Shown piece after piece: positions 3,534 through 16,631 of a stretch of DNA of 19,050 nucleotides. The stretch comes from Diplonema japonicum (Eukaryota; Protista; Euglenozoa: Diplonemea): positions 1 through 19,050 of the forward strand of contig OZ025768.1 in assembly GCA_964019335.1 (NCBI GenBank), given 5' to 3'. The number at the start of each line of letters is the position of its first letter. Positions within the stretch are counted from its first letter, which is position 1. The position numbers were made by a program, and so were the translations under genes. The notes beneath the pieces are model-generated. The model had not been told where the DNA came from. It searched no databases and was given only the letters and a program-made list of their open reading frames with translations.

Positions 3534-4361
3534 ACCAGCATACTACTTATCATGTAAGTACTCTGTGTAGTAGTACATACAGTATATGATATACATGTAC
3601 TAGCACTAACACAGTGTGTATGCCTACTTATCATAGTAGTAGTATTATCATATCATGGCATGATGGTACATCCTAAGGATGCCAGCATATCCAGAGAGTG
3701 GGGAGAACACACCATCTCTCTAGCCATGACATCATGGAGCATACCACTAACGGTATCATTACCATAGATCATGTCATGCATGGATCATGGGATGTACAGA
3801 GTAGAGGTATTATCTACTAGAAGAGCAGCTGTGCTCTCTCTAGCCATACCATCTACAGAGTATGCTGGCAGTATACTCTAGTAACCATGTACCTCATATC
3901 CTAGTCATGAGGATGGTGGCGGTATACTCTACCAACCATGTACCTCATACTGTAGCTACTCCATTATCCCTAGAGAAGGGAATGGTGGTGGTGTACATCC
4001 TAGGCACAATGCCTGTGGGGAATACCACCAGTACTGTGAGTAGTACATCCTAGCTAAGCAGAGAAGGAGATGCTCCTGCTCATGCCAATGCATGTAGTGC
4101 TATCAGTACTATCAGTAGTATATCCTGTAGTAAGTACAGAGAGTACAGGCATGTATATCCTGGGAGTACACACCAATGCATCCCAAGGATGTGGTGCTGT
4201 CTCTAGGGAGTACATCCGTAGTACTATCAGTAGTATATCCTGTAGTAAGTACAGTGGTAAGTACTCATGCCAATGCATGTAGTGCTACCAGTACTATCAT
4301 AGTATATCCATAGTACTAGCTGTAAGGAGAGACACTGTTAGCTAGCAGATGATGTAGCCCA

Positions 4362-4562
4362 ATGCTAGGAGTATCATGGCTACTGGATGGAGCAGCTCCT
4401 GTTCATGCCATGTTGTGCTCCTACTCTACTCATGCCAACATCACCATCAGCTACAACCTAGGAGCTACTGCTGGTGTGATGCTAGCTGTACAGATACTCA
4501 GTGGAGTCATCATAGCCATGAGCTACGTAGCTAGTGCTGACTACGCATTCCCCACATTAGAC
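4362..4562 (+). CDS. cob: Cytochrome b N-terminal gene fragment (first module)
   Basis: Translates from ATG 4362 as MLGVSWLLDGAAPVHAMLCSYSTHANITISYNLGATAGVMLAVQILSGVIIAMSYVASADYAFPTLD. This matches the cytochrome b N-terminus pattern (P-x-N-I-S-x-x-W-N-F-G-S-L-L-G...Q-I-L-T-G-L-F-L-A-M-H-Y...A-F). Similarity ends before the RDVNxGW motif and the frame closes at TAG 4599-4601. The 3' boundary is approximate. Confidence 0.9.
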
Positions 4563-4616
4563 AGATACCTGTGTGCTACTGATACAGTGCTGTCATACTA
4601 GCAGTACTGTGAGTAG

Positions 4617-4632
4617 TATATATATATATATA
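4617..4632. repeat. (TA)8 microsatellite between the cob and nad4 modules
   Basis: TATATATATATATATA, seen only in cassette 1. Confidence 0.9.
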
Positions 4633-4652
4633 CAGTAGTAAGTACTACTAGC

Positions 4653-4811
4653 CATAACTATGCTCTGTCAGTAGCAGTGCTGATGCACGTAGCCTTCTAC
4701 TGTAAGATACCATGTTATCCTATGCAAGGATGGCTAACGGAGGCACACGTGGAAAGCACCACAGATGCTTCAGTGCTGTTAGCTGGTATCTACCTGAAGG
4801 TAGGGATCATA
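4653..4811 (+). CDS. nad4: NADH dehydrogenase subunit 4 internal fragment (module); absent from the ORF track
   Basis: Manual translation gives HNYALSVAVLMHVAFYCKIPCYPMQGWLTEAHVESTTDASVLLAGIYLKVGII. This matches the ND4 signature AFxVKxPxxPxHxWLPxAHVEAPxxxSxxLAGxLLKxG. The frame is open only between TAG 4614-4616 and TAG 4836-4838. Confidence 0.9.
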
Positions 4812-4826
4812 GCTAAGCAGAGCCTA

Positions 4827-4928
4827 CGTAGAACATAGCCTGCATCAGTACGAGTGCATCACTCACAGTAGCTGTGTGTCTATATCATATACCAGTAGAC
4901 TACTGCTCACCAGCACACTACGTCTGCT
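4827..4928 (-). CDS. Possible small module, weakly nad3-like (TGA=Trp)
   Basis: Unique, non-repeat sequence. The minus frame reads SRRSVLVSSSLLVYDIDTQLLWVMHSYWCRLCST with two TGA codons read as Trp. LLVYDIDTQLL loosely resembles ND3 FLxFDLExxLL. Other frames are also partly open, so strand and identity are uncertain. Confidence 0.3.
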
Positions 4929-5085
4929 CTAATGATGTAAGTACAATGATAAGTACTCATGCCATTCCTAGCTAGCACAGGTAATGCATGTAGTGCTACC
5001 AATACTATCAGTAGTACATCCTAGCTAAGCAGAGAAGGAGATGCTCCTGCTCATGCTGTGGCTGCATCAGTACTGTCATACTATC

Positions 5086-14000: not shown

Positions 14001-15488
14001 GTCTGGTGGTGGTATCTCATAACAGGGGATTCCATAGCAGGGCACGTCTGGGGGCCTGTAGTAAGTACCTGTTAGCAGAGACACACACTGTTACCAGGGA
14101 CACACACTGTTAGCAGAGAGTATGTAACCACTGGTATGGGGTAGTACATTATCCCTTGTATACTATGGTATTAGCCCCTACACACTGTCTACTAACTAAC
14201 CCCTTGTCTAACCACTGGTACTAACCCCTATGTATTAGACCCTTATCCTAACCCCTCTCTGTACCCCCCCTTATATTGGGGGGTCCTATACCCTACCCCT
14301 TTGGGGACACCTTGGGGGCACCTTACTATCCTAACAGTTATCCTTACGCGCGCGCGCGCGCGTGGGGGATATAGCGAGGTAATTTGCATAATTCTTACGT
14401 AGTGTCCCACAAGGGTTTCAGGAATTGGAGGGCTACAGGGACGTAGATATTCTCTGGGACGTAGCGGGTTAATTTGCAGAAATCACCCGTAGGAGCCCAG
14501 AGAGGTGTCCCAATATTGGAGGGCTACAGGGACGTAAACCATTCCAGGGCTCCTACGGGGTAATTCTACGAATTCACCCGATACAGCCCTGAAGGGGTTC
14601 AGGAATCGGAGGGCTACAGGGACGTAAACCCCTAGCATGCCCCCTTATCCAGCCCTTCTGGGACCCCTCAATATACCCTCCTATTACCACCTATAATACT
14701 ATCATTACATACTATGTAAGTACTGTGTATGTATCATATATCTATCCCATGTATACGGGGGATATATGTACATGCATAATACTAGTATTACATAATGATG
14801 TACTAACTGTATTAATGGTATCATAACCCTACTCATCCCCTCATGACATCATCCTGGGGATGGGGACCCCTTCTCTAGATCCCAGGATCCCAGGGGGTGG
14901 AGACCCAACCTCTAGATCCCAGGATCCCTAGCTTGGACCACCATCTCTAGACACCACCACATCCTGAGAGTGTCTGTAGAGATACCAGCATACTACTTAT
15001 CATGTAAGTACTCTGTGTAGTAGTACATACAGTATATGATATACATGTACTAGCACTAACACAGTGTGTATGCCTACTTATCATAGTAGTAGTATTATCA
15101 TATCATGGCATGATGGTACATCCTAAGGATGCCAGCATATCCAGAGAGTGGGGAGAACATACCATCTCTCTCTCTAGCCATGACATCATGGAGCATACCA
15201 CTAACGGTATCATTACCATAGATCATGTCATGCATGGATCATGGGATGTACAGAGTAGAGGTATTATCTACTAGAAGAGCAGCTGTGCTCTCTAGCCATA
15301 CCATCTACAGAGTATGGTGGCGGTATACTCTAGTAACCATGTACCTCATATCCTAGTCATGAGGATGGTGGCGGTATACTCTAGTAACCATGTACCTCAT
15401 ACTGTAGCTACTCCATTATCCCTAGAGAAGGGAATGGTGGTGGTGTACATCCTAGGCAGTAATGCCTGTGGGGAATACCACCAGTACT
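11004..15488. repeat. Constant region, copy 3, complete
   Basis: Same landmarks and order as copy 2, with a single copy of the ~294-bp block. Confidence 0.9.
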
Positions 15489-15616
15489 ACAGAGAGTATC
15501 TCATACCATATCCTAGTCATGAGGATGATGGTGTGCTCTCTCTAGGGAAGTACATCCGTAGTACTATCAGTAGTATACCCTGTAGTAAGTACAGTAAGTA
15601 CTATCCTGGGAGTACA

Positions 15617-15808
15617 GCTACTCATGGTGTAGCCTACTGTTGCTAGTACAGCTATGAACATGGGCAGCAGCAATACCAGAGATGTAGTGCTGGTAGCTCA
15701 TGTGCTATCCAACAGTACCTTCTTGGTAGTCCATGTAGCTGTATGTACTCATCCCATACTCTGATACATGCATCACATCAGGATGGCATGCTGTGTGCTA
15801 CTAGCTAT
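15617..15808 (-). CDS. nad5: Second copy of the nad5-like module
   Basis: Appears identical by eye to 9989-10180 at offset 5628. Confidence 0.55.
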
Positions 15809-16139
15809 GACATACTATCAGTAAGTACAGTGGTAAGTACTCATGCCAATGCATGTAGTGCTACCAGTACTATCAGTAGGATATACTGTAGTAAGTACAG
15901 TGGTAAGTACTCATGCCAATGCATGTAGTGCTACCAGTAGTACAGAGAGTACAGGCATGTCATATCCTGGGAGTACACACACCAATGCATCCCAAGGATG
16001 TGGTGTGCTCTCTCTAGCAATGTAGCTACTCCATTATCCCTGTTCTAGGGATGGAGTGGTGGTGGTGTACATCCTAGGCAGTAATGCCTGTGGGGAATAC
16101 CACCAGTACTGTCAGTACTACATCCTAGCTAAGCAGAGG

Positions 16140-16313
16140 ACAGCTCTACGTAGGGTGACAGTGAGCAGCACAGTGAGCTGGTACACCGTGGGCTTCCTGC
16201 TCATGTTCCTGTTAGGAGGAGTAACAGGCTTAGTGCTAGCCAACAGTGAAGTAGATCTAGCAGTGCATGATACCTACTACGTGGTGGCCCACTTCCATTA
16301 CGTACTGTCACTA
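16140..16313 (+). CDS. cox1: Second copy of the cox1 module
   Basis: Same translation as 10512-10685 at offset 5628, including [15 protein letters not shown]. Confidence 0.96.
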
Positions 16314-16416
16314 TGCCAGGAGAGTACAGTGACATACTATCAGTAAGTACAGTGGTAAGTACTCATGCCAATGCATGTAGTGCTACCAGTACTATCAGTA
16401 GGATATCCTAGCTAAC

Positions 16417-16566
16417 ACAGTGAAGGAAGCACCACTGTTAGCTGTAGTGGTATCTACACAGGACATGCTAGCAAGAGCTCTACTCACAGAGAGCACACGC
16501 ATGCAGAACCATCTACTGAACATAGCCTGTCATGCTGGTGATGTAGAGTGCTTAGTAGCTCTACTC
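16417..16566 (+). CDS. nad7: Second copy of the nad7 module
   Basis: Appears identical by eye to 10789-10938 at offset 5628. Confidence 0.88.
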
Positions 16567-16631
16567 ATATCATCCTAGCTAACACCATGAATGCATGTAG
16601 TGCTACCAGTATCAGTAGTAGTACATCCTGT

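Follow-up and report, generated by a model that had tools for sequence, protein, structure and literature searches.

A long-read contig that is very probably part of the Diplonema japonicum mitochondrial genome carries pieces of cob, nad4, cox1, and nad7 in variable cassettes of a repeated 5.6-5.9 kb backbone

No known case of genes that are kept in pieces and rebuilt as RNA is more extreme than that of diplonemid mitochondria. The closest described counterpart of the DNA studied here, contig OZ025768.1 of a Diplonema japonicum assembly, is the mitochondrial DNA (mtDNA) of D. japonicum strain YPF1604, for which 30 chromosomes of five classes with a total of 80 gene pieces (modules) were reported; 23 of the chromosomes carry more than one module, and the median length of the variable, module-bearing part (the cassette) is ~1 kb (Kaur et al. 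2020, PMC7049700). The same study found break points that are conserved with other diplonemids, demonstrated the joining of modules in this species, and described an expression pathway in which the promoter lies within the constant region, the transcript ends are trimmed, editing takes place, and the modules are joined with neither spliceosomal nor group I/II machinery. Short reads could not bridge the repeats, and the chromosome sizes were accordingly given there as unknown. A genome note on the same strain describes a PacBio HiFi assembly of 62.30 Mb in 121 scaffolds, in which the mitochondrial genome, obtained with MitoHiFi, is multipartite (PMC13598402). The stretch analysed here (the window) is the entire contig of 19,050 nt, referred to as C124 among the 132 contigs (C1 onward) of an assembly of 62.5 Mb (62.54 Mb). 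We conclude, with a probability of about 0.92, that it belongs, as one complete contig, to the multipartite mtDNA of D. japonicum, very probably of strain YPF1604 (peDipJapo1.1).

Self-comparison with BLAST showed that C124 consists of 3.3 backbone units arranged head-to-tail (Table 1), and that the three complete units are 5815, 5909, and 5628 nt long. The units are 95-99.9% alike apart from a variable part of ~1 kb at the same relative position in each. The repeating backbone of 5.6-5.9 kb with gene pieces at a constant position, which the initial annotation had deduced from the letters alone, was thus recovered. The unit length of 5628-5909 bp is close to the 5794-5852 bp of the class A chromosomes of D. 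papillatum (Vlcek et al. 2011, PMC3035467), which resemble the present units also in the combination of a repeat-rich constant region with a unique cassette, in the module sizes, in the occurrence of modules in either orientation, and probably in the use of TGA as a tryptophan codon. In D. papillatum, however, a cassette nearly always holds one module (PMC3035467), whereas here two or three lie in each variable part and, in one of the two cassette types, are parted by spacers present on all the chromosomes. The mtDNA of D. japonicum YPF1604 is alike in its multi-module cassettes of ~1 kb, its class-specific constant-region flanks, and its many multi-module chromosomes; the difference is that it was described from short reads that left the sizes unknown (PMC7049700), whereas C124 is a long-read sequence with full units of 5.6-5.9 kb and their head-to-tail chaining. 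The minicircles of kinetoplastids, and those of red algae and dinoflagellates, likewise comprise many small molecules with a conserved region and a variable coding part, but they hold guide RNAs or whole genes, and here there are only non-overlapping gene pieces that need RNA joining.

Four gene pieces were identified in the window, all on the + strand and roughly 130-210 bases long: cob, nad4, cox1, and nad7. Similarity searches, a check proposed together with the initial annotation, were made for each piece separately and not for a joined gene model, and assigned each of them by comparison with Pfam, PDB, and environmental proteins. The cob frame (4362-4598) matched PF00033 (E=1.6e-7) and PDB cytochrome b (E=5.8e-9, residues 14-69), and a match to the own genome covered 4419-4562. 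The nad4 frame (4647-4835) matched PF00361 (E=4.4e-10); all of the 36 best PDB chains are ND4/NuoM/NdhD (best E=3.4e-7), and not ND5 or ND2. The cox1 match (10524-10682) was the strongest, with E=1.7e-15 for PF00115 and E=2.8e-17 for PDB COX1 (residues 329-377). The nad7 piece gave no Pfam match; its PDB match (10807-10935) was to the 49-kDa/ND7 subunit in 19 of the 19 best chains, over homologous residues ~90-132 (best E=6e-4), and the piece is also found in an environmental protein, P0121 (E=1.2e-7). In the PDB alignments, the conserved residues are kept without frameshift in all four pieces, and in each the similarity breaks off abruptly and gives way to unrelated sequence, in agreement with what had been seen beforehand. 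In-frame TGA is absent from the four modules of the window; one to three occur in each of the matched pieces on C123, C127, C128, C130, and C132, which fits TGA coding for tryptophan, on a comparison of whole pieces rather than single residues.

The ends of the pieces can be compared with known break points. When the cox1 piece was searched as protein against public metagenome and run assemblies, its short relatives proved to be of two kinds. Those of the genomic type begin near (L/M)RR and all end right after HFHYVLS, where unrelated residues follow, as in C124. The contiguous type continues across both ends, with ...IKVFSWLVAM before and LGAVFGLL... after the module; these sequences are from relatives ~81-84% identical, not from D. 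japonicum. Because of the ends of the two types, we placed cox1 module 6 at ~10516-10683 (168 nt). Similarly, nad7 module 3 was placed at ~10806-10938 (133 nt), because P0121 stops at LVALL, as does the piece in C124. In D. papillatum, cox1 module 6, nad7 module 3, and cob module 1 are 169, 133, and 198 nt long, respectively (PMC3035467); the lengths here, with ends set by homology, are ~168, ~133, and ~210 nt. As far as homology can place them, the ends of the three pieces fit the D. papillatum break points. The genomic-type cox1 pieces comprise P0001-P0004, P0012, P0016, P0053, P0089, P0090, P0103, and P0114, and the contiguous type comprises P0006, P0008, P0014, P0058, and P0111. Such environmental cox1 pieces could be used to survey the gene break points of diplonemids.

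Partner pieces of the same genes were found on other contigs that share the backbone. The whole assembly of 62.5 Mb was searched in six frames with profiles. In positions of the profile hidden Markov models, cox1 pieces cover 37-91 on C127, 76-176 on C123, 157-233 on C126, and 301-352 on C124, and cob pieces cover 3-50 on C124 and 69-150 and 145-189 on C130/C132. Pieces of the nad2/4/5 type lie on C128 and C130 besides C124. The proposal that the cassettes of all such contigs would tile complete genes was borne out in part: further cox1 and cob pieces do lie on sister contigs, and of the nine cox1 modules the profile search detected only some. The undetected modules may either be too diverged for the model or lie on chromosomes missing from the eleven mitochondrial contigs. 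On C130 (24545-25435) and C132 (1808-2698), the cob pieces 145-189 and 69-150 share one cassette, on the strand opposite to the backbone, with the later piece upstream of the earlier one.

An alternative would regard the pieces as dead remnants of mitochondrial genes (nuclear insertions or pseudogenes) that form no part of expressed genes. Their shortness and abrupt ends would suit such remnants, and nothing further speaks for them. The initial annotation had named intact contiguous genes elsewhere in the organism as the finding that would turn the pieces into such fragments; across the 62.5 Mb, cox1, cob, nad4-type, and nad7 sequences were found only as pieces, all of them on mitochondrial contigs and none forming an intact gene, and that ground for the alternative therefore falls away. 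Also against it, the pieces keep conserved residues without frameshifts, and they end at the break points of D. papillatum and uncultured relatives. The backbone is restricted to 11 small contigs (C122-C132 of 132) at very high depth, a more distant form being that on C122 and C123, and the joining of modules has been shown in this very species (Kaur et al. 2020, PMC7049700). We consider this alternative very improbable. The reading as diplonemid-type mtDNA, already favoured from the letters, is supported by the presence of pieces only, the shared backbone, the partners on other backbone contigs, the fitting break points, and the lack of transfer RNA (tRNA) genes, none of which was detected by ARAGORN in the 19 kb window.

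Three observations weigh against the reading of C124 as a diplonemid-type mitochondrial chromosome sequence. With unlike units chained in a linear molecule as assembled, C124 departs from the textbook picture of one circle per cassette. The ends of the modules were set by where similarity stops, not by complementary DNA of the strain. Finally, the sole sequencing run guessed to be RNA covered the repeat block of the backbone with two contigs (6192-6727) but did not cover any module; these two contigs could be due to transcription of the backbone or to DNA in the library.

By analogy with the model published for D. papillatum and D. japonicum, each cassette would be transcribed together with its backbone flanks, and the flanks would then be trimmed from the module transcripts. 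Some modules would be edited (U-appendage, C-to-U, A-to-I), and contiguous mRNAs would be formed by joining the module RNAs with partner modules whose transcripts come from other chromosomes. One unit type of C124 holds cob module 1 and the nad4 module, and the other an unassigned segment, cox1 module 6, and nad7 module 3. The gene pieces, cassettes, and chromosome classes of D. japonicum have been known since 2020, and the assembly itself was published in 2025-26; because the D. japonicum version of the system is already described, the contig adds no new kind of system. Its modest contributions, as a long-read sequence, are the full length of the units (5.6-5.9 kb) and a hint of a possible physical linkage between unlike ones.

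The variable parts differ in their construction. In region A, the cob and nad4 modules lie within one unique stretch, with a short run of TA repeats between them. In region B, three unique segments (9985-10177, ~10511-10694, and ~10800-10960) alternate with spacers (10178-10510 and 10695-10799) that are present on all backbone contigs. The unique parts of both regions are exclusive to C124 and occur once per unit type. A short edge box, TCCTAGCTAA, is found on the left side of both the cox1 and the nad7 segment of region B and again after nad7, and a box of the form GTAAGTACAGTGGTAAGTACTCAT...ATGCATGTAGTGCTACC marks the right edge of the segments. From this arrangement we infer that the long cassette of D. 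japonicum appears to be a composite of several elementary cassettes and their flanks. A variable part was confirmed in each complete unit. As a correction to the initial annotation, the third region (B') shows 0 differences from region B in 1009 bases, so C124 contains two cassette types, not three.

The first slot of region B, segment B1, matches nothing. Its most protein-like frame, on the + strand, had no match in Pfam or PDB and no homologue among 5.8 billion proteins, and the segment was left untouched by searches of the own genome with PF00361 (the nad2/4/5 core) and PF00662 (the nad5 N-terminal part). Its earlier assignment as probably nad5 was rejected on these grounds, while the other four gene assignments stood. 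On the minus strand, a GLPRR motif resembles MGLPRRMPD of diplonemid Cox1, which brought cox1 module 8 into consideration; no cox1 match was obtained, and the resemblance was judged to be probably due to chance. As a module, segment B1 may belong to a gene of low conservation (of the nad2/3/4L/6/9 type or a 'y' gene); otherwise it may be an empty cassette.

The backbone itself is not uniform within the contig. Three variants were distinguished: K0 (1-4146) before region A, K1 (5066-9973) between regions A and B, and K2 (10983-15601) between the two copies of B, which equals K3, the stretch that follows. K1 is a mosaic: identical to the start of K0 over 5816-6055, it then mostly follows K2, retains K0-type patches at 8245-8356 and the second copy of a 294-nt repeat, and ends in the left flank specific to B. 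Because of the three variants, C124 is not simply two circles unrolled. An abrupt recombination point between the A and B types at ~6056 was considered and rejected, since the block there is hypervariable in every unit and leaves no clean breakpoint. The haplotypes of 29 of the 30 backbone copies (loci L001-L030), on nine contigs given as C124-C130 and C132, were compared. Among these 29 units, 15 core haplotypes were distinguished, which come in runs of identical units, often pairs, followed by a switch of type. The contigs with a close backbone (C124-C130 and C132) are all chains of two to six units; C126 joins two backbone classes ~7% apart, and C130 and C132 appear to have two unit types in common, in equal order. 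As the repeat block near the unit start is distinct in every unit type, mosaic backbones are the rule.

What the chaining of unlike units reflects is less certain than the identity of the contig. The unit length of 5628-5909 would fit small circles of a few kb, while C124 itself is linear, with 3.3 chained units belonging to two types. The multi-unit contig may be real, in which case the chromosomes would be, at least partly, head-to-tail multimers that mix cassette types, and not solely separate monomeric circles of ~5.7 kb, arising through backbone recombination or rolling-circle-like replication. The requirement for three backbone variants in C124 would be accounted for in this way, as would the mosaic K1 with its B-specific left flank, the runs and switches among the 15 core haplotypes of the 29 units, the change on C126 to a class ~7% different, and the order of two unit types that appears to recur on C130 and C132; the HiFi reads, with an average of ~9.4 kb (7.93 Gb in 8.4e5 reads; PMC13598402), are also longer than one unit. 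On the other hand, assemblers often unroll and chain small circles that are nearly identical, and the hypervariable repeat block differs from unit to unit, so that mosaic backbones are possible on monomers too. For the chromosomes of D. papillatum, monomeric circles of 6 and 7 kb that are not catenated have been reported (PMC7049700). The sequencing runs were covered over the region concerned as Logan contigs of <100 nt. We regard genuine multimers of this kind as doubtful, though worth considering.

The chain of unlike units is most likely a path that runs across numerous circles of nearly identical sequence, or across recombinant or multimeric molecules that arise occasionally, and the chained multi-unit form is probably not the normal form of the chromosome. 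A further reading, in which a sizeable share of D. japonicum mtDNA would exist as multimers linking different cassette units via recombinant backbones, with the cassettes continually reshuffled, is likewise doubtful. If it were true, a cassette would no longer correspond physically to a small circle of its own, and the physical linkage of unlike units would bear on replication and on the shuffling of cassettes. Among the papers available to the search, none addressing multimers in diplonemids was found.

Table 1. Features of contig C124 (positions in the 19,050-nt window)
Feature	Position	Strand	Remarks
Backbone unit 1	1..5815	+	From self-BLAST offsets and variant comparison; holds cassette region A; variant K0, which differs from the two others in the contig
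Backbone unit 2	5816..11724	+	Carries cassette region B; variant K1, a mosaic of K0-like and K2-like stretches
Backbone unit 3	11725..17352	+	Carries an exact second copy of region B; 294-nt repeat present once, not twice
Partial backbone unit 4	17353..19050	+	Variant as in unit 3; 9062-13422 and 14691-19050 are 99.93% identical
Cassette (variable) region A	4147..5065	+	Unique core 4343-4940, with a single occurrence in the whole assembly; cob and nad4 pieces
cob module 1	4362..4575	+	ATG at 4362; cytochrome b N-terminus; similarity over 4404-4571; ends from homology only
(TA)8 microsatellite	4617..4632		Between the cob and nad4 modules
nad4 module	4647..4817	+	About residues 211-253 of ND4; own-genome match 4647-4817; module number (about 4 of 8) is an estimate
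Cassette (variable) region B	9974..10982	+	Three unique segments parted by spacer repeats found in all backbone contigs
Unique segment B1	9985..10177		193 bases; first slot of cassette B; second copy at 15613-15805; occurs only in C124; no detectable relative in the frames searched
cox1 module 6	10516..10683	+	~168 nt; starts near ALRR and ends just past HFHYVLS
nad7 module 3	10806..10938	+	~133 nt; PDB ND7 and environmental relative P0121
Cassette region B'	15602..16610	+	Identical to B; B1' at 15613-15805, cox1 module 6 at ~16144-16311, nad7 module 3 at ~16434-16566; cox1 match 16152-16310
294-nt tandem repeat of the backbone	8768..9354	+	Two copies here and at 2945-3534; one copy at 14691-14983
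Hypervariable block with internal repeats of ~780, 516, and 270 nt	5802..6978	+	Own version in each chromosome type

Outside the cassettes, the backbone of C124 is non-coding and rich in internal repeats, including inverted repeats, and blocks of ~780, 516, and 270 nt recur near the start of every unit. The GC skew changes sign twice per unit. An Rfam scan of the window gave no credible match, only two weak hits to microRNA models that lie far under the gathering scores.

The public sequencing runs were examined as Logan contigs. DNA runs of 2018, 2020, and 2024 contain the cassettes. In a 698-nt contig of the 2018 run, one part matches cassette A without mismatch over 4700-4966, that is, the nad4 module and its downstream flank; the other 431 nt would extend upstream over the cob module. 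Backbone differences are present at intermediate shares in the DNA runs of 2018-2024, including a TG indel at 9476-9477, an alternative joint 6057>6570 that skips ~512 bases of the repeat block, and ~35 other sites. Because of these intermediate shares, the 'constant' region is to be regarded as a population of variants, as expected for a backbone that is common to many chromosomes. The summed word depth was ~10-20x lower in cassette-specific bins than in the backbone, a ratio that is not a copy number. For positions 4300-10200 of the window, 69-77% of the sampled words are contained in runs that bear the labels of eight other organisms; these runs stem from seven studies out of the nine listed, and one of the seven also includes runs of organism A. 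This share corresponds approximately to the backbone without the cassettes, and it may be due to host DNA in projects on endosymbionts, to carry-over from one library to another, or to close relatives.

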